Source: Podarcis bocagei (taxonomy: Eukaryota). From it: DNA of 64,000 nucleotides. A model generated the notes under the pieces. That model was given only the letters and a program-made list of their open reading frames with translations. It was not told where the DNA came from and searched no databases. Each line of letters starts with the position of its first letter. Position 1 is the first letter of the stretch. The stretch is from NCBI GenBank assembly GCA_964188305.1, contig OZ076885.1. One strand, 5' to 3'. Shown here in pieces: positions 19,501 through 43,500 of the stretch. Both the position numbers and the translations under genes were made by a program.

Positions 19501-19698
19501 TCAGTCGTCGTCCTGTTGCAGCTGCTGGTGCCTACTCTGGTACCACAACATGGTAGGAAGGTTCTGGCAGCCTTGGTAGCGGCGCTGGCGCTCCTCTTCC
19601 CCCAGGGGTGGCACAGAGTGGCAGGGCGCCCCTGCTAATGAGACGTTGAGCAGCTGGGCTGGGGTGCCCGAGCCAAAGACTGCAGACCATGGACCCAC
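19501..19698 (-). CDS. Novel gene exon 7 (VGPW...LNVSLAGAPC...YQGCQNLPTMLWY...DDD*)
   Basis: Acceptor ctcgttccttgcAG; 198 nt to TGA. Confidence 0.87.
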   Translation of the reverse strand: MGPWSAVFGSGTPAQLLNVSLAGAPCHSVPPLGEEERQRRYQGCQNLPTMLWYQSRHQQLQQDDD

Positions 19699-22600
19699 CT
19701 GCAAGGAACGAGAGAGATTGCTTCACTTAAGGTTGCCCTGGGCCACAACTCAATCCCTCGTCAGCATTAATGCTTATATAGCACTTCCAAAGCATCAGTG
19801 TTTCAGGTACATTATCTCAGTATCTTATACAATCAGCCTGTAAGGATGGCCAGTAAAGCAAACTGAATTAAGCCTGGCTGGCTGGCTTCCACATGCTCTA
19901 AAAATGGTAAGTTTCAGTGACTTCCTTTAGTTTGTTGCATCCAACCCTGTGCCATCACTTGGAATTAACCAATTTAGCCTGGATCCATTGCACTTGATTA
20001 AAAAAAATCAGTTCAAACTATCTTGAATTTACACACCTTTTTTCCTTTTAATGGCAATGGTCTGTTTTTGAGCAGTAAAACTAATTGGGATGTAACAAAA
20101 CACACGTTTTTCTTTCCAAAGGTGCCATATTGCACATCAAAAGACTCCTTTAGTGCAAGCTACCTTCCACAAACTTCAGATGTCATTCTCTAATTGTCAT
20201 CACAGATGGCCTGTGTGTCAGTTACATGAGCAAAGGTTGGCTCTGGCCATTTGCCAAGTTCTAGTTTTCAGCATTGCTGCCTCTACAGCTAAGCATTTAT
20301 TTTTCAGTCTGCCGTGCTGCCCAATTGATTCCCAACTCTTTCCCTACACACAGAGGAGAAACCAAACTGGTTGCAAGATGGTGCATAAGATGGCTTGGCC
20401 TTACCAGGAGCTGTGATCTGCCCTGAACTTGCTGCACAGCTCAGGCCAGTTTTCATCTATGTTAACTGGCTAAGCACCAATGTCCCTACTCCCCGCTCCC
20501 CTCCCCTGGAACTGGGAGTAGAGCCCAGGGAGTGCTGCCACCCAGTTAGTGATGCTGCCACTGGAAGCGGCCACTTTGAACTGGAGAGACACCTGTTGCT
20601 AATGCCACCTGCCAAAAACCAATTTGAGGACAGGCTTTCTAGTCACTATTTTGAGCCTCCTGGTATTATGTCCAGAACTAACATCTCTTGAGGGACCATA
20701 AATAGATGGCAGAGCATATGCATGCAGAAGGTACCAGGTTCGAAACCCAGTGTCCCCAGTTAAAAGGACCTGACAGCAGGCAACATGAAACCTGAGAGCC
20801 ACTGCCAGAGTAGACAACATTGGACAATTAGACTGACTCCATATGTTCCTATGCTCTGCAAACACCAAGCCTTGGACTCCCAACCATCACAGCCCACCTT
20901 CCTTCCACGGCACTTACCGGCAACAAATGCTGGAGGAGGCACTGGTCGGGCTGCAGTCCGGCCCAGAACTCGGCAAAAGCCGACCCACCGCTGGTGGTAG
21001 TGGTGGCAGTGGCAGTGGTGGTGCTACGTATGAGCACCACGTTGGGATGGCGCCGTGATGCCCGTAGCTTCTTCGTCAGTGGCCCCGGATAGCTCTGGTC
21101 AAGGAAGAGGAGAACCCGGCGAGCGTTGCAGCTCTCCAAGTCTGCTAGCAGCTCCGAGATGGGGTACCGCTCCTTAGGATCTGCCTGTTGCAGGGAAGGG
21201 ACAGCTCATCAGCACCTGCCCCTTGGTCACTGACACACATGCACACCCCTCCCTTCTCCACAGTTGGGAGATCAAGGGGATTCCACTGCCTGGGAGTTAA
21301 AAGGAGCGGATTAAATGGGGAAGAGCAAGACAGGGCGAGCACCCACTGCAAAGGCCGGTGTTGTTTTCTCCCTGCAGGCACACATGAAAGAGCTGGACGG
21401 CCCTTTGAAGGGAACAGAGGAGAGGAGAGGGCTGCAGCCTCCACCTGCAGTTCTGTCAGCATCTCTCCTTCCTCCAGTCGGGCTTCCCAGGACATGCTGG
21501 GACAGGTGGGATGACCTCCTCCTCCTCCACCACCCAACTGCCAAAAGTGGCTCACTTCACTTTCCATTTCCAGCCTAGGAAACCCCAAAGGAAACTTGGC
21601 AAATGGCCAAATGCAGGCCTTTGAGAAGGGATGGTGCCGCTTTGTATGTGTGCACAAGGATCTTAGGCAGCCGCCCCACACTTTCCTGCCCCAGTTGGGT
21701 TCACTTGGCACCCTGACTTCACTGCTCCCTGCCAGCAATTGATCATGGCTTACCCCCATGTGATAAATGCATGAGTGAAAGTCTCCTTTATATCGTTAGC
21801 ATCCCCATTCCCTGCTCGGCTAGGCAGGTTACATTAGCATCAATAGCCAAGGTCCTTTTCGGGATGTATCATGAGGAAGTAGGATTCATTCATTTAACAA
21901 GATGCATATACCGCTTGACTGCTGTAAAACCTCCAAGCGGTTTTACTTGTAAGTTAACCTGCTGCTGCTGCTTGCTTCATTCTGCACCAACCGGTAGCTT
22001 TTCCCAACACGCAACATTCATCAGTGCTTGGCTGACCACTGGGTAGGTGGCCTGTGGCTGTGGCTATTGTCACGGATTCAAAATTCTAACTTTTTAAAAG
22101 CGAGGAGCAATGAAGAACACCATGACGGGTTTCCTATTGGATTTCTATGGGTCAGCGTACGGCTGTCTCAATCCACCTGGAGACAATTCCTGGGCAGAGC
22201 CACAGACTCCTTGACAAAATAATATATTGAATAGCATTGCTGATGGGGACTAATTTAGACCATTTCCTCGATGTATTTCTCCCTCTGATCTCTCTCTGCC
22301 TCTGCCTAACTTACCTGGTGGGTTACTCCCCCCAATAAACTGGCAAGAGATGTGCCCCAAGAGATGATATCCCTGCTGTGAAATAAGCAGCACCACTTTG
22401 TAACTTGTGCGGTACTGTATTTCTTGTGCCCCCACACATTAATTCACATGTAGAGGTTGTGCACCAGAGGGAGGGTGGGAGGGAGAGAGGGAAGAGGCAC
22501 ATACCTTTCTCTCCTCCTACAGTGATGTTATACCTGGATCCATCATGCCACCCCACCATCCTCTGATAATACACACCCCATCCATCCTTAAGCTCTGGAG

Positions 22601-24266
22601 GGTTTTGGCTACACATGCAAAATTCCAGTAGGAGAGGGTTGATATCAATAGTGGGGACAGAGGATGGGATAGAACCTTCCTAATATCATAGCTAAGGCCA
22701 AAGGGCTAAAAAAACTGGACCATTCCCATCATACCTCAACAATGATGATAGATCAGCTTGGCTTGGCAATTTAAAAAAAAATCCTCAAAAAAAGAAAACA
22801 GCAGCAGGTTCATTTTGTCTCCTATACCCTTTTGAAATGTGGCTCTTTTGGGGGAGGTGTTATTAGGTTATTGTACTTATTTTGATTTTATATATTGTGA
22901 TCTTTTCTGTGAACCACCCTGAGACCTCTGGGTATAGGGTGGTATATAAATTCAATCAATCAATCATTCAATCAAAAAATGGCTTGTGATGTTTCGTAAA
23001 GAGAGTACAGAGACGAGTGCCTAGGACAACCAATGTTGGCAGCTCCATGGGCAAGTGCTGCCCTGCTCCTCCTAGACAGCCTCTCCCTGACTTCCAGCCC
23101 TGACCCCCCACTTACAATGCCATTACGGTTGGCATCCCACAGCAGCATGGTGCCATCGCTGGCTGCTGGGCTGTTGAGGTAGAGCACCAGCGAGTCGGCG
23201 CAGTGGAGGCTCCTGCAGACCAGAGCCAGGTGGGAGCGAATGGCCAGCTTCTCAGTGGCTGGGTGCACATCGCCCATCTCCACAGTCACTGTCCGGAAAA
23301 GAAGAGGGAGAGAGGGATCTGCTAATCCCGTGCCCCAAAGGCCTGTCTCCTCCCTCCAACCCACTCCAGTCTTGTACACCAAAGCAGCAGTCCCCCCCCC
23401 AGACCACCCAAAAACCATTGGTCTTGGCACACCACTTAATGTTTTTTCTGCCTGTTGTACCAATTGGAATACACCATGCTAGATGCTGCCTGATTTTTCA
23501 AGCTGTATTCTGAGTCCTTCTTATACGTTGCATTTTATTGTGTTCTGTCAATTCAAACTGTAATGTAATAAAATCCAAGGAAAGAAAAATGAAGAAGCAT
23601 TAAAATACAATTGAGTATTTAATGCGAACCACCTGAAAGAAGCTTGACCACAGTTTGGGAACACCTTCCCTGTGGCATCCTCATTCCTCCAACCACCACT
23701 TGCTCCCTGCCACCACATCCTGCTCATCTGGGAAGGGGCCAGAGTTGGGAGCAGCATGGGAATATTTACTAGGCTCTCTCATTAGCCCACTCTGCAAAAT
23801 GCCCCACAGGTGGTTTGGTCCATGCCGCGCAGGCCTGTAATTTTTGCAGGGACATGTAACCCAAAGGCGAGATTTCGCCAGGGCTAGATGCATTCACACC
23901 CAGCATTTTCTCAAGTGGGATGGACAAGTAGGGGGACACTCTGAAATGCAATACACCCCCCCCCCATGCAGAACCTTGGTGGCAGGGAGAAGGAAGTGCC
24001 AGGAACAGAGTCTTGCCTCTGAAGAGCAGCTCATGGCGTCCCGACACCCCTGAGTAGGGCTGGGGGGATATACTGATATATCAACCAAAACCAGTTTCTA
24101 GGCCACATTGTGATAAATGTTTCAAAATCAATGACCCAGCAATATATCGTGAATCACGTGTGTGTGCGTGCGCATGCATTATGCAAAAATCACGATATTT
24201 GGAAAAACAGGAAACTACCCAGTGCTTCTGTGTCTCCCTGAGTTGAATGAGCAGATGCTCTTCCCT

Positions 24267-24326
<60 letters not shown>

Positions 24327-27300
24327 CACACCTGCGCCTGGAAGCAGTCAGCAAAAAGCACGGTTTTGTGAAGCTAGCTGATGCTGAAATTTAAGGAAGT
24401 CCCTCCAGCTCGCGTGAGCAGGAGTGGCATGGGGACTTGCTCAGCTGTAGGGCCGGGCAAAGTATATCAACTGCTTCCTTCTCCCCTCCTTATCTCCTAC
24501 TCCCTTCTTATTTTAGACATCATGATATATCAGTCTATCACAATATTTAGCTGGCGCTTTATCACAATGTTGAAAACCAGATTATCGCCCAGCCCTACCG
24601 ATGGGCACTGAAAAGTCACCCACCCCCCTAAGGAAACCAAGAGCCCCGTCCCACCCTTGCAGCCGACAGCTAGCTCTCTTTTGTACTGGTACCTGAGGCC
24701 TGCCCCTCGCTCGCGAAGAAGGCCTTGATGTGCTCTTGGCGGAAGCCGTTCCGTCGAAGCATCTGGTAGAAGAGCAGCAGGTTCTGCGCATGGTGGGGGT
24801 AGGTGACCTGCTCCTGCCAGCCACCTGGGAGAGAAGCACGGTAAGCAATCCAGGGGGGAAAACATGGTGGAAGAGAGGCTGAAGCTGGTTGCAAGGGGCA
24901 TAGGAGCACTAACACTGCCCCTCAAGGAGACAAGGGGCTCATGCCCAGTAGAACAAAGCTGTAGCTCAGTAGCAGAGCATGTACTTGCACACAGAAAGAG
25001 CCGGGTTCAATCCCCGGCATCTCCAGATAAGGTTGGGCATGTCCGCTGTCTGAAGCCTTGGAGAGCCACTGCCAATCAGAGTGGCCAATACTCAGCTAGG
25101 TGGACCAATGAGCTGACGCACCACAAGGCTGAGCCTCCACTCAGATTCACCCTCATCCATCTGCTGGCCAAATGCAGTGCAAGCACTGCAAGCCAAATTC
25201 ACTGGCTTGCAGTGGTGTGCGGTCAGTGGACTGGGGCACTAGGCTAGTCCCCTAAATGTCCCCGCTAAATTAGAATATTGAAGTATTAAAGCCTGGTGCC
25301 TCCTTCCCAAAGCCCAGGAAGCTTCTGCCAGCTTAGGGATGGAGGCACGATGCTCCGACCAGGCCCAAGAGTCCTTCCACCACCTTCCCAAAGCCCACCT
25401 GGCCTGGGAAGCTTCAGCCCAGCTTAGGGAGGGACCAGTGAAAAAAAAGACAGTAATGGAACCAATAAATTACTGTGAAAATCCCTGAATTAAACAAGAA
25501 CTTGAGTTTTGTAGCCGGCATCTCGTTAAGTTCTTGTTCAATTCCAGTTTATTTTTTTTTATTTTTGTTATTCTATAGTCGATTACTTCTCGTTTCAGGG
25601 ATTTTCACGGTAAATTCTTTTGTTCCGTGTAACAGCTTAGGGAGGGAGGCTCGATGCTCTCTCACACACAATGTCGCCCCCTCCCTCAATCGCCCTCACA
25701 AGCTGGTGCCTCTGGCCCTAACTGTTACCCTAAGAAAAAAATCACCTCACACCACTGATGGCTTCAGATTCCCAGAACCAGCAGATCCTTGCAGCCCCCA
25801 GGCACCATTTCTCACCTGCAATCAGCACTGCGTGGTCACACGTCTGGTACATGCGGCAAGACTTGTACAACGGCAGCTGCTGCCGGTGGCATCGCCGCGT
25901 GTTCTTGTTGAGTTCGCAGTAAGCGGCCGTGGAGCTGGAGCTCGCAAGGGGCAGGGGCTCCGGGCAGGGGCTGTATCCACGGAGATCTGGGAAAGAAAAG
26001 AAAGTGTAGCAGGACGGCAGGAGGGGAAAGAATCTCAGGTCCAACAGACCCAGACAGACACCTGAATTCTCATGGGGGCCCCTTCGCAACGAGGTCTGGG
26101 TAACCACTGTTATCATCTTCAAAGGGGTTGCTCCACAACAGATCACCACACCTTTACAACATCTGAGCTACGGTCTCTCAGACCTTGGGATTATTGAAAT
26201 ATAGACAACAAAAAATGAATCCACTCATATGGGGTCTAAGAGACCCATTCTTTTTTTAAGCGATGGGGACGGAAGTTACTTCTGGGGCGCTGCCAGGATT
26301 CGGGGCCCTGAAGCTCAAACTTCATTTGTTTCAAAGTAGATCCACCTCTGGACACAGGAAATAAGAAAATGATTGGTGAGTCGAGGTGCCCTAGGCCAAG
26401 GGCAAACTTGGGACAATTAAGTTCCAGTTCTGTGGTGCTCCCTTCCAGCTGAGATTCCAACACCTATTGAAGACCTTTTCTGTTTCAGCAGGCACTTTAA
26501 GAAAGTTTTCTGCTTTTTTACAGTTTTAACTGATTAGTGTATCTTTTTAACCTTACTGTACACCGCTTAGGGACTAAGGTGTTAAGCGGTATATAAACTG
26601 TTGAAATAAATAAATAAAAAGGTGGTCACATTGTTCTCCCCCTTCCCATGTTGTCCTCACAACCAGGTAGGTTAGGCTGAGAGACAGTGACTGGCCCAAG
26701 GTCACCCTATGAGCTTCAAGGCTGAGTGGGGATTTGAACCTCAGTCTCCCAGGTCCTAACCACGCAATCTAACCACTGCACAAGACTGTCATCTACCTGC
26801 TACATCCCCTCTTCCTCCACTGCCCACTTACCAAGCTTTGGACTTCCTAAATCCTGAAAGTGGGGGAGTCTCCTTTGTGGTTTACAATCCTGATCCTGTA
26901 ACCCCGCCCCCCTCCACCCCACTGCCCATCCAATCCAGGGACTTACCCACGCAGTTCAGCCTTTGCAGGTGCTTGGGGTCCTGTGCCACCACTACCATGG
27001 GCAGGAAATGGATCTCACAGAGACCGACGGGGGGCTCCTCGCGGCGGATGCGTCCCACAGACCGCTGGCTCCTTCCCTTGCCACGGCCCGGTCGGCGCTT
27101 CAGCTGGTTCTCACAGCGGCTCCTCTGGGCTGGAATCAAGCATTCGTAGCCGCCTGCAGGCAAAGAGCAAACATGTCCAGAATAAAACCTGCTGAGAAAG
27201 TTCCCTATACAGGGCTGCCTTCAGGTGTCTTCTAAAAGTCAGATTGTTGTTTATTTCCTTGACATCGTTCCACAGGGCAGGTGCAACTACCGAGAAGGCC

Positions 27301-30300
27301 CTCTGCATGGTTCCCTGTAGCTTCGCTTCTTGCAATGAGGGAACCGCCAGAAGGCCCTCGGAGCCGGACCTCAGTGTCTGGGTTGAATGATGGGGGCGGA
27401 GACGCTCCTTCAGGTATACTGGACCAAGGGTGTTTAGGGCTTTAAAGGTCAGCATCAAGACTTCGAATTGTGCTCAGAAATGTACCAGGAGCCAGTGGAG
27501 GTCTTTCAGGACCAGTGTTAAATGGCCTGGTGGCCGCTCCCAGTCACTAATCTGACAGCCGCATTCTGGATTAGTTGTAGTTTCCCAGTCACCTTCAAAG
27601 GTAGCAGAGTGCATTGCCGTAGTCCAAGTGGGAGATAACCAGAGCATGTACCACTCTGGCGAAACAGTGCACAGGCAGGCAGGGTCTCAGCTGGCATACC
27701 AGATGGAGCTGGTAGAAAGCTACCCTGGACACAGAATAATATATTATTATATATACATTAATATTATTTTATTTTAGTGCATGGTTTAATTTTCTTAATT
27801 TCTCCATGGGACAAGCAGAGTTCAAAAAGGTTCCAACAAATTAGTAGATTCTGTGGAACAGGTGATGGGAATGAATCTTTGCTTCAGTTGTGATCAATGA
27901 GCAGTTTATAGAGCATTCATGTGCAACACCCTCAACCCTGTGGAAAGACCAGAGAAAATATACATCTTGTTTTTCTTTATTTTGTCTTATTATATACTGA
28001 CCATTTGCCTCCTGTTTTGCTGGGGGTTCACAATATTTTTTGCATTCTTGTTTGTATATATTATCTAAAACCTCAATAAAAATATTAAAACAACAAGCCA
28101 TAATCACCTGTGCATACTACATCTCTACTGTAAACTTTGCAGAACCAAGTCAGAATCTTGTCTCCCCAAGCAGAATAAAAGGGGATTTCCTCCTAGGGGT
28201 GTAAAGTATGGGGTATAAAACTCCCTCCAAAAATGGAGAGGATAAGAAAGGAGTTGGTTGCCAGTTAGGCTGCAGTGCTTGGCCAATTAATTCACAAGGC
28301 TGATGGATTAAAACACATTTCTGATAGGCTAAAAAAAGGACTCCATGATTAATCACACTAAAAAAAAGTTAATCATTTTAAAATAATGAAGGTTAATTAT
28401 TTTTAAAAGAAAGAAGATGCATTTCTCCTCTGTTGTCTCAGCCACATGAGTGAAAATCTCTTCTAATATGGGACTTGCAATACAGTAATGCACATAAATA
28501 TATTTCTTTTTAAGGATGCTTTCCCTGCTTTCAGAATTTTTTTATTTCCTCATTTACATAGAACAAATCAATTAATTAACTAAGCATGTCTAACTAAACT
28601 ACTATGTCTACTCAGAAGCAAATCCAATGGAATTCAATGGAGTTTACTCCCAGGTGAGACGGTTTAGGATTAGAACAACAATCCTACTTTTCAACGTCGG
28701 CAAGAAAGACTGATGTGAAGGAAACGCTCCCTGGGCTCAGATAAACTGTCGTTTTCAGCGCGGAAGAGCAAGGAATTATTGCACAATGTAATGCTTTCTC
28801 CCTCTCCTCCCCTTTGCACACCCCCTAAATCTGTTCTGGGTGTTCCCCTCAACCCTCTGGATCAGATTTGGGGGTGGCACAGCGGGGAGGGAATCCTATT
28901 GCACTAGCACAAGTATTTGGCTGATTTCTGCCTGTCACATATCTTATATCACAGATTCGGGGATTCCTGTGTTCAAAGGGCTAAACCCTGATTCATACTA
29001 AGCCCTGAAAGACACCCTGAGTATTAGCCCATCAATGACAGTCATGCCGAGAAAGATTCCACCCAACTGAGCCTCCCACCTGTCACCCTTTGCACTGCAG
29101 CACCTTCTAACTTTCCTGTACCAAACTCCTCCTCTGATGTAGGGATGTAAGGCTGTAGGGATGGAGTTTTCCCCAGCGCGTCCCAGGATCAGGAGGGAAC
29201 TGGAGATACCCCTCCAGCAGTAGATCCTCTCTCTTGGCTATCCCAAATTCTCCAAGTAACCCCTGCAGGCTGGTCTCAGGATGCCACTGCATACAGGACT
29301 GACACAAACACTGAGCTAGGGACAGCGTCACATACAACTCATTGATGGAAAGCAGACACTGTTGGGGCCCCGACAGTCCCAACTGCACTTGCCAATTGCA
29401 GTTATAAAAGCATGTGTGTGGAAGGCAGAGGAGATGAGAACAGGAGCATATGTGAAAGGAGGACGCTGGAGAAGCCAGGCAGCCTTCCTTCCAGATTTCA
29501 CTGGCTCATAGGATCAGAGGGAACCCAAAGACCAGTCCATAGTAAGCAGGTGCTCCTCACATCTCACATCTCACACCAAACCCTCTACCCTGCTTTTAGC
29601 TCCTACCATGGAAATCAGTGTCTGGCAAAGAGGAAGAGCCAGGATTACTGCAGAGCAGGCAACTAGATCCCTCGAGCAACTGAGACAAGTCACAAGGTGG
29701 AGACCCCAAATCACTCCTCAGTCTTATCTGGGAGGACATCATCTTGCAACCCCAAACATTGCGTAACGTCTCTCCCTCTGCCATACCTGAAGTATCATCC
29801 ATCAGTTGATTTTCTTGAAAAGACGTATCTTTTGGCTCAAGCTTTTCCTGAATCCCTGATTCTATAATAACTGTTTTCCTGGGTTGCTGTTTTTTAATGT
29901 TCTATCTGTTTTTAGGACACTGTCTAATTTTCTATTTTTTGGATTTCTGTACACTGTTTAGAGGTTTTTTAATATTAAGCAGCCTAGAAATGCTTTTAAT
30001 CAATCAATCAATCAATCAAATATAAAAACTGCTTTTAATTAATTCCAGATTAGCGCATCCTCAGTGGAAACTTTATTGGACAGTTTATCTCCAGCCCCAA
30101 CATTCTCTTCCCTGTCTTTTAAGATACTGGGGCAAAGGGCACTCTGCCCCAAGCGATGCTGAAAAAGAAGCTACAAAATATCTGAAGAGGTGATCCAGTG
30201 CGTGAGGAAGAACACCAGGAGGAGGATTAAGGTGCATAAACACAGTCAGTAATTTTCGTGAGAAAAGCATGTCCCGAGGATAAGGCGGGTCACAGGGTGC

Positions 30301-31207
30301 AGCAGTTGGGATACTGAATCTTGGGGAAGGGTAGGCGCAAGTGCCTGTTTTGTAAACCAGAGCGGCACTGGGCCTCAGATATGACTAGATCTCATATCTA
30401 ACCGCTGTACAACGTTTATTTAAACCACCTTATTTTATGCCGGATCATCTGATGTGGACGCCTTTACAGCGCAGATCAGATGCTGGGGGCGGTTCTGCAT
30501 ATGCGTTCTGCGTATGCTTAGGATCAGGCTCCTCATAGATTGTTTAGGGTTGAAATCCGGGCAGATTTGAGCACAAATGCCAGATCTGATCTGGGTCCTG
30601 GCACCATGGAACAGGAGGAAATAGGAAGCCTTGGGTGGGATGGGCGCAAGCCAATATGTTCTCTGCTGGGAGTGGTCGCCCTCGGGGCGCGCGTGGCCTG
30701 AGGATGCGGCATTCACTCACCCACGTAGAGGCTGTCGCGACTCCGGCACCGGCGCGGGCTGACGTTGAAGTCGACATAGAAGAGCAGGAGCGGGTGGCCG
30801 AAGTTGGCGCCCGGGGTGGGGTCCAGCACGAGGATGGCGTCTTGCGCGGAGGGCGCGCCGGTGGGGCGCAGCGGGCTGCCGCTCTGGTTGCGGCCGGCCA
30901 CGAAGGGCGGAGCGCCGGGCCTGTCTCCCCAGCCGTCGGGCAGCAGCGCCCGCACCTTGTGGCCCGGGCGGGCGGGCTCGGAGACATAGACGGCGGGCCC
31001 GGGCCCCTGGGAAAGGCGCGCCAGGCGCTGGCACTGCGGCCGCGGCAAGAGCCCGCCGCGCTCGGGACACTGCGCCGCCGCCACGTGCCGAAGCGCCGCC
31101 GCCGCCCAGCGCGCCACCCGCGCCTCGGAGAAGCGGTTCCCCGACGGGGCGGCCGCGCACGGCCAAGCGAGGGAGGCAGCGGCCAGCGCCAACAGCAGCG
31201 GGGCCAT
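19501..31207 (-). CDS. Uncharacterised secreted protein, 544 aa: signal peptide + Cys-rich region + degenerate peptidase C13 (legumain/GPI8)-like domain
   Basis: Seven exons with canonical GT-AG ends and consistent phases (1,1,1,1,0,0): 31207-30721, 27153-26947, 25986-25816, 24824-24693, 23288-23116, 21184-20918, 19698-19501 (TGA). Total 1635 nt with no internal stop. The start is in a CpG island with hydrophobic MAPLLLALAAASLAWPCAAA. AATAAA lies about 540 nt after the stop. Confidence 0.9.
20918..21184 (-). CDS. Novel gene exon 6 (ADPKERYPISELLADLESCNARRVLLFLDQSYPG...QHLLP)
   Basis: Acceptor cccttccctgcaacAG, donor CCG|GTAAGT, 267 nt, phase 0-0. Confidence 0.9.
23116..23288 (-). CDS. Novel gene exon 5 (VTVEMGDVHPATEK...DSLVLYLNSPAASDGTMLLWDANRNGI)
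   Basis: Acceptor cttcttttccggacAG, donor ATT|GTAAG, 173 nt, phase 1-0. Confidence 0.9.
24055..24597. mobile_element. hAT-like MITE with internal (TC)n(TG)n microsatellite
   Basis: Ends TAGGGCTGGGGGATATA...TTATCGCCCAGCCCTA; no clear TSD. A related element lies near 58720-59694. Confidence 0.6.
24693..24824 (-). CDS. Novel gene exon 4 (GGWQEQVTYPHHAQNLLLFYQMLRRNGFRQEHIKAFFASEGQAS)
   Basis: Acceptor ttctctcccAG, donor G|GTACC, 132 nt; resembles the legumain segment YRHQAD..AYQ..HRNG..EQI. Confidence 0.88.
24958..25120 (+). mobile_element. tRNA-derived SINE fragment
   Basis: A-box-like TAGCTCAGTAG and B-box GGTTCAATCCCC followed by a non-tRNA body. Confidence 0.6.
25816..25986 (-). CDS. Novel gene exon 3 (DLRGYSPCP...CELNKNTRRC...CRMYQTCDHAVLIA)
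   Basis: Acceptor ttttctttcccAG, donor G|GTGAG, 171 nt, phase 1-1. Confidence 0.9.
26947..27153 (-). CDS. Novel gene exon 2 (GYECLIPAQRSRCENQLKRR...LCEIHFLPMVV...RLNCV)
   Basis: Acceptor ctctttgcctgcAG, donor G|GTAAGT, 207 nt, phase 1-1. Confidence 0.88.
27195..27735 (-). mobile_element. L2-clade LINE fragment (C-terminus of ORF2)
   Basis: Translation LTFKALNTLGPVYLKERL...RAFSVVAPALWN...FRRHLKAALY is typical of L2 ORF2 ends. Related 3' ends occur near 8995-9175 and 56800-56950. Confidence 0.8.
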
Positions 31208-37598: not shown

Positions 37599-40500
37599 TC
37601 AGGACAGACAGCAGTTGGAGGGCTTTGTGCTTCGAGCCTAGGAGGACACAAATATGCTGAGGGTAAGAACAGCCAGAGAGGGCAGCACATCCTTCCCTCC
37701 CTGCCCAACAAGACCGGACTGGCCATTTTCTACCAGAAGAACCTTACACCACCCCACCTGCACAAAGCACACTGCTTTACATTCTATGATGATGGTGGAG
37801 GGCATTATTCTCACTCCTGTTTTGTTTTAAGCTGTGAAATCACGTTGTCTAAAACAATACAAATAAACCAAACTTGTATGGCTATACTTATTGATATTAT
37901 TTCTAATATAGATATTAAATGGTTATACAGTGGTGCCTTGCAAGATGAAAAGAATCCGTTCTGTGATTCTCTTCGTCTAGCGGTTTTTTCGTCTTGCGAT
38001 GCAAGCCCATTGACGGATTAGCGGATTAACGCTATTAGCGGCTTTTAGCGGCTTATCTGCTGATCGGATCAGCTGATAAGCGGCTTAGAGGCTTAGAAAA
38101 AAGGGGGGGAAGGAAAAAAAAACAGCAGGAACTCGCAAGACATTGTCGTCTTGCGAAGAAAGCCCATAGGAAATTCGTTTTGCGAAGCACCTCCAAAACG
38201 GAAAACTCTTTTGTCTAGCGAGTTTTCCGTCTTGCGAGGCATTCGTCTTGCGGGGCACCACTGTACTTAATTGTTCACTTGATATTTTGTGAACTGCTTT
38301 GGGCACCGTTTTGAGGGCAAGTGGCATAAAAGCAAGTGGATGACGACAATATATTGCAAGGAGAGAGGGAAAGGGCCTTTGTTCTGTAATCCCAACCTGC
38401 AAACAGGACTGGTGGCCAAGGGTTAGATTTAAATCTATGTGAAAAAATCTGCAGTGCACAAGTCTGCCTGACCTTTTGGGATACCTGCTTCTCCCCAAGC
38501 TGGGCAGGAAGATTCAGTGTAGTTAGTTAACCTACTCCTCCCTGCAACTAAAAGCATTTACCAAACCTAGGAGCATCCAGCCTCCAGAGTTCCATATACA
38601 ATCAAAGCTGATAAGAAAAGACCCTAAAGGCAGCTGATCTGATTTGGGCTCTAGTTGACTGGTTTGGCTTTGGACTTCCTTGATGCGATTGTCCTCTTTT
38701 ATTCACAAGGAAGCCTTGGTAGACTGGCAGAGTCTATGTGCAGGAGGAGGATCAGAAGCGACTTTGTGGGAATCGCCTCATCTTGCTCACCTGTTGCTGC
38801 TGCTGCTGCTGCTGCTGCCGCCGGTATTCCTCCTCGCTGGCCGACAGGGCCCGAGCCAGTGCAAGGTCTTCCTCTTCCTGGGCGCTGTTTGAGACACAGG
38901 ACTGGATGAGTCAGGCATGCTGCACAATTAAGAATCTGTACCCCCAGCAACTTCCTAGCACATTCCTCCCGAGATAGGGGAGCAATTTATTTTAACAAGA
39001 ACTTGCATTCCATTTAAATCATAAAAACCTCCAAGCAGAGGTCAGTATGTTGGTGTGCACATAGTGATCTCACCACATTTAGATCTGTATTTAATGCTTT
39101 GAGGGCCTAAGCAGCACAGACGTCTATGCTCTGCCTCCACAGCTGCAGGCAGTAATGCTACTCAATACCACTTACTGGAAACCACAGGAGGAGAGTGGGG
39201 TCAAGCTCGGGTCCTGCTTGCCAGTTTCCCACAGCCATCTGCTGGACTAGATGGGCCAGTGGCCTGATCCAGCAGGCTCTCCTTATACTCGGAGGACTGG
39301 AACTGATGTCAACAGTCCTCTGGTTACATGAATGTTAACACAGCCTTTCCCGCCCCCCACTCCATTCTCTGCCAGAGTGTCTCCCATATATGCAGATTCC
39401 AAGCAGGCAGCCTGGCACAGTGGCGCCAGTGAGATATTGAAGCCAGCTGATCTCTGCAGGGCTGGCGCAACCGTGCTGTACCTGCGGGGTTGTGGTTGGG
39501 TGGGCACTGCCTCTGCTAGGGACATCTCCAAGGCTCGCTGCAGCGCTTCCTCCTCACTCTGAAACACAAAAGCAGATTCAGCCTGCCGTGGAGGAGGCTA
39601 ACAGCCTCAGCAACTTGTAGCTTATTGGTACAGGGCAAAGCATATGCCAAGACCAAACTAAGCCTCCTGATGTATATTGTACCCACGAGGCATAGTTTGG
39701 TCAGTATACACTTCCAGAGTTAACACTAAAAACATTACTTCTGGTGAATGAGCCACCACAGCCCCTAGGGGGCCATGACTTGTGCCCCAGACTTTTTAGA
39801 CTCATCTACCCATATACTATCAAACCAAAGGGACACATTGGTTGCAAGGTGTGAATTTTCTTTCAGCTCTTCTACCCCACTGTGGAGGTTTTCACTAGAG
39901 GGAGTTTGGGTGGGGGGACAGGAATTTTTACCAGCTTTCCCCTTTCCCTTGCAGTCACCAATACTGTCTTTCCAACCCTCTGGAGCAGACTTTCTCGAGG
40001 CCTAGGGGAAAGGAAGAACTGCAGAAAATCACCTCCCCCACTTCTGGCCTTGGCTGCATCCAGTTAGCAGAGTGCCACAGTGGACAAATCTGGACCCAGC
40101 CCACCCTGTCTCACCACAGCAACCACTCACAGATGCATATTAAACAAAGGACATGAAGCGATATGTCCACTTGTAAGCTGAGACGAGGCTTACAAGTGAA
40201 GGCACCCACAAGATAATACATTATTTCTCTCTCTGTTTCCTGGCTTCTTGGTTTCATTTGTAATTCGGCTTAAGATTTTTGTTCTCACTTTTGAAGCTCT
40301 TACTTATTTGCCTCTCCTCCTGATCTGTCCTTGGTTCCCCACTGGATTCCATTCTGAACACTTATACACGACTCTTCTCCTTGTTACACCCAGGATTTCT
40401 TGTCCCAACTACCACCACCCTTTCTCTCTGGCTTCTTTTTAACACTAGAACATTTCCCCCCTGCAAATATTCACAGTTTGTTGTTTCTTTACAAACAGTA

Positions 40501-43500
40501 ACTTCTTAAAATGCATTTCCCCTGTTTCTGCCTGTCAGCTCCACCCCACCCTGCATTTGGGTCCTTTTAAACCTATTTGATTTCTAATATTTCTAGGTTT
40601 ATATTCAGAAAAAAACAACCCATTTGTGTAACTGACAATGCTGTATATATATCAGAAGTAAGCACCATCAATTTCAATGAGGATTATTCTCAGTGGGTCT
40701 AGGATTGCAGTCTTTAAACTGTTTTCAGATTACTGTCTTAAACCAGGAAACACACAACTTTGTATTTCTGTCTTATTCCCATTTTTTCCTGCTTAAGACT
40801 GCAAGCAGTTTTGCAAGCCATTTGTTTTCTCTCATGTAAATAACCCAGTATATTCTGGAATGAGATCCTAACAACATATATCCGCTTTGCAGCCACTTAC
40901 CTGGAGTGTGGCATATGTGCAATGGAAAAGGCAACAGCCTGTGTTTAATGGTGTAAATGCCCAGTTTGTTGGCCAGGACTTACCAATCCATTCTGCAGGG
41001 CAACCACCGGAGGAGATATGCTTTGTGGCGGAGGAGGTGCTCTTGCCATCTCACTGGCTCTGTGTGCAAAAAAAGATGTCAACTGTCACTACTTGTGAGG
41101 CATGTAAGATGGAGAGGGAAAATCCCCAGGGATAATCCACCAGGGTGCCTTGGAACATAACCCCTGCGTCCATTGGGAGTTGCCTGTGCAATGCTTCCTG
41201 AAGCTGTACGGTAGGCTTAGAAGAAAGGGTAGGGGACAACGCAGACTCGGGCAGTTATTTTACCTGCTTGAGGTTGGCAGAGCTGCAGCAGCTCTCGTGG
41301 CTCCGTTGCTGGGTGTAGTGCTTGTAGGTGCTTTGGCAGGTTTTTGAGCTCTGGCGATCGCGGCACTCCTGAAACGGGAAACGCAACTCTTGGTAAAAGG
41401 AGCACCTCTCTCGCCATTGCAGCAAGCCCTTCCCCCTTCCCTTGAGACTAGCAAGAATCCACTCCAGCACTATCCTTTCAGGGACAATGTGAACTGTTGA
41501 CCATCAACATCTGGAGGGCCACAGGCCCCCAACTCGTGTGCTGGAACAACCAAGGATGGGGAGGAAACCACTGTCTCCTGAAGAATGCACACCAGCATTA
41601 CTGCATGGCTGCAGGCGTGTCTGGCACATGCCAACCGTTTTGCCCAGGCCAGCCCTCTGTCCCGCCTTTACCCTGCCTTGGAGAGGGAATGCCCAGGGCC
41701 AGCGCAGTCATGATCCAGTGGGTGTCGGTGCTTGAGGCAGAAGTTGCCGTGACACTGGTCACACAGAACCTTCATCATCTCCCGTTGCTTGCAGCCAGGC
41801 CTCTGACACTTGTTGGTAAAGATCTAGGCAGATGGACACAGTTGTGATTGAAGACAGTTGGGGGGGGGGAGGAAGGCACCCAGGACACAGCTGCTTTCTA
41901 AATGTATGCAAGAGACCTTTGCTTGTTGCAAAGTGACCTCTCTGGGGCGCAAGCCTGGGCAGTGTGCATGGAGGTCCTGGACTGCCCAAATGACAAGGAA
42001 ATGCCGAACTGCAAGCCTCTAACCAATGAGAAGTTACATCCAAATTACGGTAATCCCCAAGAATTGGCCTCCAGATGCTGCTGGACTACAACTCCCATCA
42101 TTCCTGACCATGGCCATGTTGTCTGGGGTTGATGGGAGTTGCAGTCCAACAATATTTAGAGGACCACACATTTCCTCCACCCCTGTTTTGAAGCTTGCTC
42201 TTCTAACTTGTCTGGCCCCAATTTGGCTTGTAGCTAGTCTGAACTCTGCAGCTAGACTAAACTCATTAGTGCTACTCAATTTGGATGTACAGCTCGTCCG
42301 TTATCCCAGCCCTTCAGATACCCTCCAGAGAAAGACCCACAGAAACCCCAAGCTGTGGGTTGCTCACAGTTCTGCCATTGAAAGGACCCCTAACGATCTG
42401 GACCACACTGCATAGGAACATAGCAAGCTGTGTTATATCAAGATTATTGGTCCATCTAGCTGATTGACTAGCAAAGACTCTGCAGGGTTTGGGACAGGGG
42501 TCTCTCCCAGCCTGACCTGGAAATTACAGGTACTTTTTTGTAAGAAAACACACACTCTATCACTGAATAATGGCCCCAAACCTGCTTGTGGAACCCAGAG
42601 TCTGCTGAGACACACAATCCAGAGTACAGGGCATATCAGATTTTGTGTGTGTATATGTTTAAATATTAATTTATAAGGAAATTATATTTCTATATGCATA
42701 GAAAAAGACAAAATTAAGGTTGCATCCAACTGTTGTATGTCTACCTATCTGATTTTGATGGACTTAAAGCAACGTGTCCCACAAGAGGCAGCAGAGAGGA
42801 CGGATGCAGCCTCTTACCTTGCGCTTGCGCTGAGCTGGGTCCGATTTGCAGTCCTGGTCAATGTGTGCTCCCACCACAATGTCAGGCATCTCTCCCCGCT
42901 TGACAGGGATCGGGATGCTGCAGAGTGGGCACACGGGGACCTGCACATCCTGGGGACAGAACAGACAGAGAGCAGGTTACACAATGGCCCCTGGCCCACT
43001 CAGTATGAGAGCATACTAGATGCTGCAGGGTCTCCTCATCTCCTAAGGTGTGCTGAATCCAAGGAGAGTATTCTGTTCTCCATCCACCCCACTCCCCAAT
43101 CTCCATGTTTATTTTCTGACATTCAAAATTCTGTACAGTGGTGCCCCGCAAGACGAATGCCTCACAAGACGGAAAACTCGCTAGACGAAAGAGTTTTCCG
43201 TTTTGGAGGTGCTTCGCAAAATGAATTTCCTATGGGCTTGCTTCGCAAGACGACAATGTCTTGCGAGTTCCTGCTGGTTTCCCCCCCCCCCTTTTTCTAA
43301 GCTGCTAAGCCGCTTATCAGCTGATCCGATCAGCAGATACGCCGCTAAAAGCCGCTAATCTTCAATGGGCTTGCTTCGCAAGACGAAAAAACCGCTAGAC
43401 GAAGAGAATCACAGAACAGATTCTTTTTGTCTTGCAAGGCACCACTGTATCTACTGAGCAGGTGCAGTTTTCACTGGCTGTTTGGGGAGATTCTTTAGCC

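Follow-up and report, generated by a model that had tools for sequence, protein, structure and literature searches.

Background

The catalytic dyad of the clan CD peptidases sits at the C-terminal end of each of the strands beta3 and beta4, and its order, type and setting define the clan (PMC4357240). A Gly beside the catalytic His is structurally conserved across the clan CD families (PMC4357240). In legumain, a member of family C13, the catalytic triad is Cys189-His148-Asn42 (PMC9604545). Its S1 pocket uses Arg44 and His45 on helix alpha1 and Ser216 and Asp231 on loop L5 (PMC4357240). Here we consider a gene on the minus strand of a 64,000-nucleotide stretch of the lizard Podarcis bocagei (contig OZ076885.1). 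That whole stretch is called the window below. The predicted protein has the fold of these enzymes over its C-terminal half, but Pro and Ser occupy the places of the catalytic His and Cys. It is a non-peptidase homologue closest to C13 that fails the defining catalytic features of both C13 and clan CD peptidases. An earlier note on this DNA had claimed the two substitutions from the sequence and called the product a pseudo-enzyme. We argue that the substitutions are right, but that the label needs to be narrowed.

The fold and its relationship to C13

For folding and searches the window protein was represented by the Elgaria ortholog P0001, which is 88% identical to it and has both dyad motifs identical. 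An AlphaFold2 model of its residues 236-544, made from a 40-sequence alignment, has a pLDDT of 75 and a pTM of 0.78. When this model is compared with human legumain using VIA-align, Z is 16.8 and the root-mean-square deviation is 3.1 Å over 201 residues (model 48-289, legumain chain 26-288). The match spans the whole protease domain. Foldseek puts PIGK first (7wld_K, E 2.4e-7), then legumain (E 2e-6) and caspases. An exhaustive structure search over 48,161 chains has clan CD members in each of its first 22 ranks. Metacaspase 4 (6w8r_A) leads with Z 16.8, followed by legumain (16.6), OaAEP1 (16.2) and PIGK (15.8). Caspases, MALT1, cFLIP and CHAT come next, and unrelated Rossmann-like folds score Z 8 or less. 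On this model it is beyond reasonable doubt that the C-terminal domain (residues ~279-520) has the clan CD caspase/haemoglobinase fold, in which helices flank a central sheet of six strands.

The structural scores do not divide C13 from the metacaspases, but the sequence evidence is all on the side of C13. Among Pfam families PF01650 (Peptidase_C13) alone recurs, with 15 of 40 members matching it at E <=1 and a best E of 6.3e-6. The lungfish and Mobula members reach 26.3 bits against a gathering cut-off of 22.8, each in two co-linear stretches. P0001 itself has no Pfam hit, and four single exons of the window gave nothing useful in Pfam. In the ESM Atlas the nearest named neighbours are Peptidase_C13 clusters, both by features and by structure. 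A family profile run against PDB sequences aligned to almost nothing but C13 chains (PALs, VPE, plant legumain), at non-significant E values of 0.35-1.2 and over beta1-alpha1 only. The AVLIAG of strand beta1 is identical to that of OaAEP1 and aligned to VyPAL2. Identity to the C13 enzymes in the structural alignments is ~13-18%. No C13 chain was matched by phmmer with a Trichuris fragment, or by a profile of beta3-beta5 only.

Two closer placements were considered and rejected. A metacaspase relative is tied on Z, but no member of the family has a Pfam Peptidase_C14 signal. An ortholog of LGMN or PIGK does not fit either, as the architecture is different and the dyad is absent.

The dyad positions

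The substitutions were read by eye from two peptides, LVLYLNSPA in exon 5 and LLFLDQSYPG in exon 6. Both are found where they were said to be, within an intact gene of 7 exons (Table 1). The flanking strands were said to be kept, and beta3 and beta4 are indeed modelled in the clan CD fold. Ser372-Pro373-Ala374 follow beta3, and Asp419-Gln420-Ser421-Tyr422-Pro423-Gly424 follow beta4. The end of modelled beta3 places Pro373 at the His position, give or take one residue, and the ends of caspase chains and the Pfam stretches place Ser421 at the Cys position.

Three concordant anchors put Ser421 on the catalytic Cys. First, the Pfam local alignments of 4 members begin at profile positions 149-151, on the basic residue just before beta4. 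Second, the structural alignments of large-subunit-only caspase chains end at model 193/caspase-1 288 and at model 191/caspase-6 164. If the last aligned pairs are contiguous, these chain ends put model Ser190 (Ser421 of the window protein) on Cys285 of caspase-1 and Cys163 of caspase-6, the catalytic cysteines of these enzymes. Third, K-S-LVFYL-E-A-C-E-S-G of OaAEP1 lines up by eye with R-R-VLLFL-D-Q-S-Y-P-G of the window (OaAEP1 sequence from PMC11476191). The support for His to Pro373 is weaker. The modelled beta3 ends at Asn371, and the spacing from a conserved Asp and Tyr is the same as in OaAEP1, where D-H-IFIYY-T-D-H-G stands by eye against D-S-LVLYL-N-S-P-A (same source). The difference in the length of loop L3, which has ~10 residues more here, leaves the register uncertain by one residue. 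However, the absence of the dyad does not depend on the register, since L3 is without any His and L4 without any Cys. In the window protein with its modelled strands, no His lies between beta3 and helix alpha3 and no Cys lies between beta4 and beta5.

One can imagine that the by-eye alignment is wrong and that an intact His/Cys dyad elsewhere in the domain makes this an active cysteine protease. The very low identity to C13 would allow that, and the profile search against PDB aligned only the N-terminal 50 residues. However, the loops that should carry the dyad are empty of His and Cys, as just described, and no other His/Cys pair lies on L3 and L4 of the modelled clan CD fold. The conserved Cys lie at N-terminal strand ends or in the tails, and the 18 Cys of the mature protein fit disulfides. 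Both the caspase chain ends and the Pfam stretches, which agree in four members, put Ser421 on the Cys. We consider a displaced dyad highly improbable. The only Cys and His nearby, Cys409 and His436, are at the N-terminal ends of beta4 and beta5, and the topology of the model would put this pair on the opposite edge of the sheet.

The rest of the site has changed too. Residue 374, at the position of the Gly after the catalytic His, is Ala in the window protein; among 128 aligned domains it is Thr in 108, Ala in 19 and Gly in 1. The profile alignment sets the family's Y-x-[R/H]-H opposite N-Y-R-H of a PAL, so that legumain's Asn42 corresponds to Tyr297, Arg44 to His299 and His45 to His300. The earlier note equated this YxHH with the S1-pocket segment of legumain and considered it retained. 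The equivalence agrees with the profile alignment, and His300 is kept in 121/128 domains, but the Arg/His-His pair is lost in several invertebrate lineages. We argue that an intact S1 pocket of the Asn/Asp type is unlikely on these sequences because, by eye, no conserved counterpart of legumain's Asp231 is evident. As far as sequence and predicted fold can show, thiol-based cleavage or transamidation of a peptide bond is impossible for this protein. It is excluded by Pro373 and Ser421 together with Ala/Thr for the Gly and Tyr/Phe for Asn42.

Conservation of the replacement residues

A vertebrate-rich set of 128 aligned domains and ~50 further sequences from invertebrates and cnidarians were compared. 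In the first set Pro373 is present in 128/128 and Ser421 in 127/128, with a single Thr. Their neighbours are nearly as constant (Asn371 124/128, Ser372 125/128, Gln420 125/128, Tyr422 124/128). Position 419 is always acidic (D 96, E 32), which agrees with the claim that the acidic residue before the nucleophile is kept. On helix alpha1, position 299 is Arg in 66 and His in 47 (113/128 together). Among the invertebrates and cnidarians the Pro is invariant, and the Ser421 position is replaced only by Thr (Artemia), by Asn in one sequence and by Cys in P0196. The Arg/His-His pair on alpha1 is frequent in molluscs, annelids and echinoderms. P0196 (512 aa, MetaClust) is the sole member seen with a Cys at the Ser421 position (A-D-Q-C-F-S-G), and it keeps Asn-Ser-Pro at the His position.

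Whether NSP and DQS are invariant in orthologs has a divided answer. The Pro and the Ser are as good as fixed, but Asn371, Ser372 and Gln420 vary by lineage and 419 alternates between D and E. The dyad neighbours co-vary: Asn-Ser...Gln is found in most members, Ala/Ser-Gly...Ala/Thr in decapods, Thr-Gly...Tyr in the coral and His-Ala/Gly...His in Trichuris and Soboliphyme. Conservation in the family peaks in the residues that line the former active site: Gly-Gly-Trp of L1, Asn-Ser-Pro of L3, Asp/Glu-Gln-Ser-Tyr of L4 and the Arg/His-His pair of alpha1, the last kept well by vertebrates and varying among invertebrates. Constraint on the protein is strongest at this former active-site face.

It is worth considering whether this could be a decaying, lineage-specific paralog of legumain or PIGK, that is, a pseudogene or a recent loss of function. 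There is no mammal or bird among the 120 listed matches of 162, which would fit a gene on its way out. However, the open reading frame and splice sites are intact, relatives have spliced transcripts, and the exon differences listed between the window and close relatives are 21 synonymous to 5 non-synonymous (n=26). A pseudogene is ruled out on these three counts. The ortholog comparison refutes recent decay as well. Pro and Ser stand in molluscs, annelids, echinoderms, arthropods, Trichuris, amphioxus and coral, and no ortholog with His/Cys was seen. A family that keeps His/Cys and could serve as a bridge was not found by a profile search from invertebrate members at E <=1, which reached the coral. 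Since the same substitutions run from coral to squamates, these alignments make them ancestral to the family and not the decay of one lineage. We give the decay scenario almost no weight.

It must be noted that, with replacement residues this strictly invariant, the site looks like one at work rather than a dead one. For this reason the term pseudo-enzyme stands only in the sense that the protein cannot use the His/Cys mechanism. A pseudo-enzyme has a homologous fold, lacks catalytic residues and is under purifying selection. Here the fold is homologous, the catalytic residues are missing and selection is purifying, with the loss of activity predicted from sequence and model.

Invariance raises another possibility, that this is a working enzyme with different chemistry. 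Ser421 would be the nucleophile on the strand-turn-helix elbow, with a base other than the canonical His. The candidate bases are His300 on alpha1, Asp388 of the LLWD motif and Lys346, and the activity would be that of a hydrolase, a transferase or a Cys-independent ligase. The near-fixed Ser is in its favor, as is its replacement in invertebrates by nothing other than Thr, Cys or Asn. Asn371, Ser372 and Gln420 co-vary by lineage around a fixed Pro and Ser, as one would expect of a tuned site, and the invariant polar residues are all on loops of the clan CD active-site face. However, a universally conserved His or other obvious base near the site is absent, and arthropods, amphioxus and Trichuris have no His300. 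Purely structural reasons can also keep a Ser constant three residues before a helix, or a Pro constant in a turn. Papers on clan CD describe the Cys/His dyad as strictly conserved, and a member of the clan with a Ser nucleophile is not known to us. The earlier note held a Ser-nucleophile variant to be the less likely outcome, and we agree: it is unlikely, though the strongest of the alternatives, and clearly behind ligand binding. That the invariant Pro/Ser site is live, which would make this the first clan CD enzyme with a Ser nucleophile (Thr/Cys in rare members), is a shade more doubtful again. If it were true, most animals other than mammals and birds would have a new reaction, of hydrolase, transferase or ligase type, that acts on secreted substrates.

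Secretion features and the N-terminal domain

Residues 1-21 form a hydrophobic leader, and the most hydrophobic 19-residue windows all lie within residues 1-23. The mature form contains 18 Cys, along with three N-glycosylation sequons. No second hydrophobic or transmembrane segment and no retention signal were found in the window protein sequence. The protein is probably secreted, given the leader, the 18 Cys, the three sequons and the lack of another hydrophobic segment. The sequence fits a disulfide-rich protein of two domains.

The N-terminal domain (residues ~25-235) gives a model with pLDDT 77 and pTM 0.74. No match to its fold was found in the PDB, the best Foldseek E being 0.86 and the best Z of an exhaustive VIA search 4.4. 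In the ESM Atlas it matches its own family only. It is nonetheless conserved from coral to reptiles, with an invariant W, P, D-P-x-P, G-H and several Cys. Several cystatin-fold chains are among its weak structure matches, at Z 3.0-4.4 and below noise. Its most conserved motif (H-D-A-V-L-V-L-D-P-x-P-x-x-S-F-G-H-P-V-x-L-F; profile 98-129, window residues ~120-150) matches residues 129-160 of GITR/TNFRSF18 at E 0.011 in a PDB sequence search, probably by chance.

A furin-like R-I-R-R (residues 197-200, 27041-27052 on the minus strand) lies in a disordered basic loop (KRRPGRGKGRSQRS...RIRREE), where pLDDT is low (model residues 154-180). R-x-R-R-E-E is kept in tetrapods and sharks, and teleosts have a weaker G-R-x-E-R. 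The strands past the RIRR loop pack into the N-terminal domain model. On that model, cleavage in the loop would yield a two-chain protein.

Comparison with known systems

Legumain, the AEPs and the plant PALs (C13, PF01650) are like the lizard protein in several ways. The fold agrees over the whole protease domain (Z 16.2-16.8, ~200 residues). The beta1-alpha1 signature AVLIAG ... Y-x-R/H-H ... YQ-L-R-G ... I is shared in the HMMER alignment to PAL, VPE and legumain. An acidic residue stands two before the nucleophile position and a Gly three after, and both would be secretory-pathway proteins with a signal peptide, a feature that is predicted here. The differences begin with the active site, where the family replaces His148 by Pro, Cys189 by Ser, Asn42 by Tyr/Phe and the Gly after the His by Ala/Thr. 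The protein is also without the activation peptide and the LSAM prodomain. The fold match stops at model 289, which is residue 520 of the 544 in the window protein, and the ~25 residues left over are too few for that ~110-residue domain. Instead there is an N-terminal domain of ~210 residues with an unrecognised fold, plus a Cys-rich linker. In addition to the longer L3, the beta2-beta3 segment is ~30 residues shorter.

PIGK/GPI8, the catalytic subunit of the GPI transamidase, is the best Foldseek match (VIA Z 14.6-16.1) and also has a lumenal caspase-like domain. However, PIGK has the His/Cys dyad and a C-terminal transmembrane helix, and the lizard protein has neither. The metacaspases (C14B) share the top structural score, but PF01650 recurs in the family with no Peptidase_C14 signal, and the beta1-alpha1 motif is of the C13 type. 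The nearest analogs in kind are the pseudo-caspase domains of cFLIP and Raptor, which likewise combine a clan CD fold and a replaced dyad with a selected, non-proteolytic role (3h13, Z 11.6; 5wbi, Z 9.9). Those proteins are cytosolic and C14 or C14-like. The lizard protein is predicted to be secreted, is C13-like and is far older (eumetazoan), with invariant replacements. By analogy it would be akin to the clan CD pseudo-enzymes cFLIP and Raptor, yet outside their families.

What the protein may do

We argue that the most probable reading, though a good way from certain, is that the protein is secreted, is not a protease and uses its conserved former active site to bind a ligand. The dyad-less cleft would be kept as a putative binding site for a peptide or protein ligand. 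Binding would take place in the secretory pathway or outside the cell. The protein may then act as a non-catalytic receptor, scaffold or regulator, and not as a protease.

A scenario closer to cFLIP is that the dead domain pairs or competes with an active C13 enzyme such as legumain or PIGK, or that it soaks up cystatins. Legumain, PIGK and cystatins all occur in the secretory pathway, which the lizard protein is predicted to enter. There are precedents in the clan, since the cFLIP protease-like domain and the Raptor caspase-like domain are themselves among the structural matches. However, identity to C13 enzymes is low and the protein has a large N-terminal domain of its own. Its long persistence in many lineages, with its own conserved surface, suggests an autonomous function. 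Legumain, moreover, is active as a monomer and does not need to dimerise (PMC4357240). By analogy such a regulator is conceivable, but we find it improbable, more so than Ser chemistry. The roles proposed in the earlier note, a scaffold, a cystatin decoy or a cFLIP-like regulator, are putative.

Several points weigh against ligand binding at a lost protease site. The register of His to Pro holds only to within about one residue, and the model is a prediction (pLDDT 75) for an ortholog that is 88% identical. The equivalents of Arg44 and His45 are absent in arthropods, amphioxus and Trichuris, and the missing counterpart of Asp231 was judged by eye against the OaAEP1 sequence. Decayed sites normally drift, and invariant replacements with a rare Thr, Cys or Asn at the Ser also fit a nucleophile. 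Finally, we infer the binding module from conservation alone. With these points counted, a secreted protein that binds a ligand is still the reading we prefer.

Gene model and locus

The gene has an intact open reading frame of 1635 nt, or 544 codons plus a stop. By splice logic on the window sequence all introns are GT-AG with compatible phases. The joints 21183>23115, 23288>24693 and 24821>25813 are each found within a single spliced contig, from 3 public runs of 3 related organisms. The gaps in these contigs end in CT..AC, corresponding to GT..AG when read on the minus strand, and the contigs are 90-99% identical to the window exons. That these runs are RNA is a guess from the run data, but we read the contigs as transcripts because they are intron-less with canonical joints in three organisms. 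The loose end of contig X2 continues into exon 7. The gene is real, is expressed in close relatives and is under purifying selection, as seen from the intact splicing and reading frame, the spliced contigs and the excess of synonymous differences given above.

Table 1. Features of the gene in the window (positions from the first letter of the window)
Feature	Position	Strand	Content and evidence
Whole coding span	19501..31207	-	7 exons; splice logic and intact open reading frame; lizard and snake orthologs 81-89% identical; flanked by ABCB6 (+) and ZFAND2B (-)
Exon 1	30721..31207	-	ATG at 31207, GT donor after 30721; signal-peptide-like leader (~residues 1-21) and first half of N-terminal domain
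Exon 2	26947..27153	-	Remainder of N-terminal domain, disordered basic loop with RIRR; AG/GT flanks and frame, matches Elgaria ortholog P0001
Exon 3	25816..25986	-	Cys-rich linker and strand beta1 (HAVLIAG); spliced contigs X2, X3, X7
Exon 4	24693..24824	-	Loop L1, helix alpha1 with Tyr297-Pro298-His299-His300, then strand beta2; profile alignment to PAL structures
Exon 5	23116..23288	-	Helix alpha2, strand beta3 (Ala363-Asn371, model strand 132-140), loop L3; spliced contigs
Exon 6	20918..21184	-	L3 end, helix alpha3, strand beta4 (Arg413-Leu418), L4, strand beta5, Thr/Ala-rich loop; spliced contigs; in the AlphaFold2 model beta4 is 182-187 and beta5 is 208-213
Exon 7	19501..19698	-	Cys-containing C-terminal tail (GAPC ... 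GCQNLPT..W), stop codon 19503-19501; phase-0 AG acceptor, family-wide conservation
N-terminal domain (residues ~25-235)	25990..31144	-	Exons 1-3
YPHH (Tyr297-His300)	24790..24801	-	Exon 4
LVLYLNSPA	23164..23190	-	Exon 5
Asn371-Ser372-Pro373	23167..23175	-	Pro373 (23169-23167) at catalytic-His position, +/- one residue; codon map, conservation, clan CD rule
LLFLDQSYPG	21083..21112	-	Exon 6
Asp419-Gln420-Ser421	21092..21100	-	Ser421 (21094-21092, AGC) at catalytic-Cys position; codon map, conservation, caspase chain ends, Pfam stretch starts

The gene lies tail to tail with an ABC transporter (ABCB6) on the plus strand, whose Walker A is at ~11.6 kb and whose LSGGEKQR is at ~15.5 kb. It sits downstream of the ZFAND2B exons, which are on the minus strand at 39.5-42.9 kb. 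In the human genome ZFAND2B and ABCB6 lie directly next to each other. A public predicted protein, P0006 (450 aa), fuses the N-terminus of ZFAND2B (zf-AN1, UIM) to exons 2, 6 and 7 of this gene and also contains an antisense translation of exon 4. Its segments map to 39460-42889, 26945-27151, 21026-21196 and 19528-19698 on the minus strand and to 24697-24795 on the plus strand. P0006 is a mis-merged model of two neighbouring genes in some squamate annotation.

Three stretches outside the coding sequence were also noticed. In intron 5, contigs over 22764-23111 are 10-40x as deep as over the exons and have many loose ends, in each of the 4 runs compared. This segment belongs to a dispersed repeat family, one abundantly represented in those libraries. 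A second stretch, 27114-27473 (minus strand) just upstream of exon 2, is an open frame of 120 codons that enters the acceptor region. Its peptide may resemble the open frame of a dispersed reptile repeat. Intron 4 has a compound dinucleotide microsatellite at 24190-24350, whose minus-strand translation reads HTHTHT...ERERER.

Distribution and significance

Exon 6 alone retrieves 56 proteins by phmmer from 1.8 billion representatives, and the full-length Elgaria ortholog retrieves 162. The relatives comprise squamate proteins, which share 81-89% identity with the window protein, and others from turtles, lungfish, bowfin, gar, sharks, rays and many teleosts. The family's more remote members belong to amphioxus, molluscs, annelids, nemerteans, a bryozoan, a brachiopod, echinoderms and a hemichordate. 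Further ones come from crustaceans, insects, a pycnogonid, Trichuris/Soboliphyme and the coral Stylophora. The top of the ranking is held by turtles and squamates, yet none of the 120 listed matches of the 162 is from a mammal, bird or crocodilian. This pattern fits a loss of the gene in mammals, birds and crocodilians, but falls short of proof.

The relatives are annotated as 'uncharacterized protein' (LOC names in squamates) or, in fish, by the zebrafish name si:ch211-67e16.11, and a precomputed Pfam domain is attached to none of them. A full-text literature search found no paper that names si:ch211-67e16.11, and literature searches found none on a legumain-like pseudo-enzyme. The family is a non-peptidase branch of a known fold that had not been described before, and its genes were already public as 'uncharacterized'.

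Accounts of C13 biology in vertebrates usually feature two proteins, legumain and PIGK. To these the gene adds a third, much-diverged branch that is ancient (eumetazoan), predicted to be secreted and unable to use the His/Cys mechanism. Its apparent loss in mammals and birds may explain why the family was overlooked. The label of a C13-like non-peptidase gives an annotation to >170 orphan proteins, with zebrafish si:ch211-67e16.11 as a testable entry point. Since the best-conserved residues of the family are the ones that replace the dyad, it is a good case for asking whether a pseudo-enzyme has turned its old active site into a binding site or has switched its chemistry.

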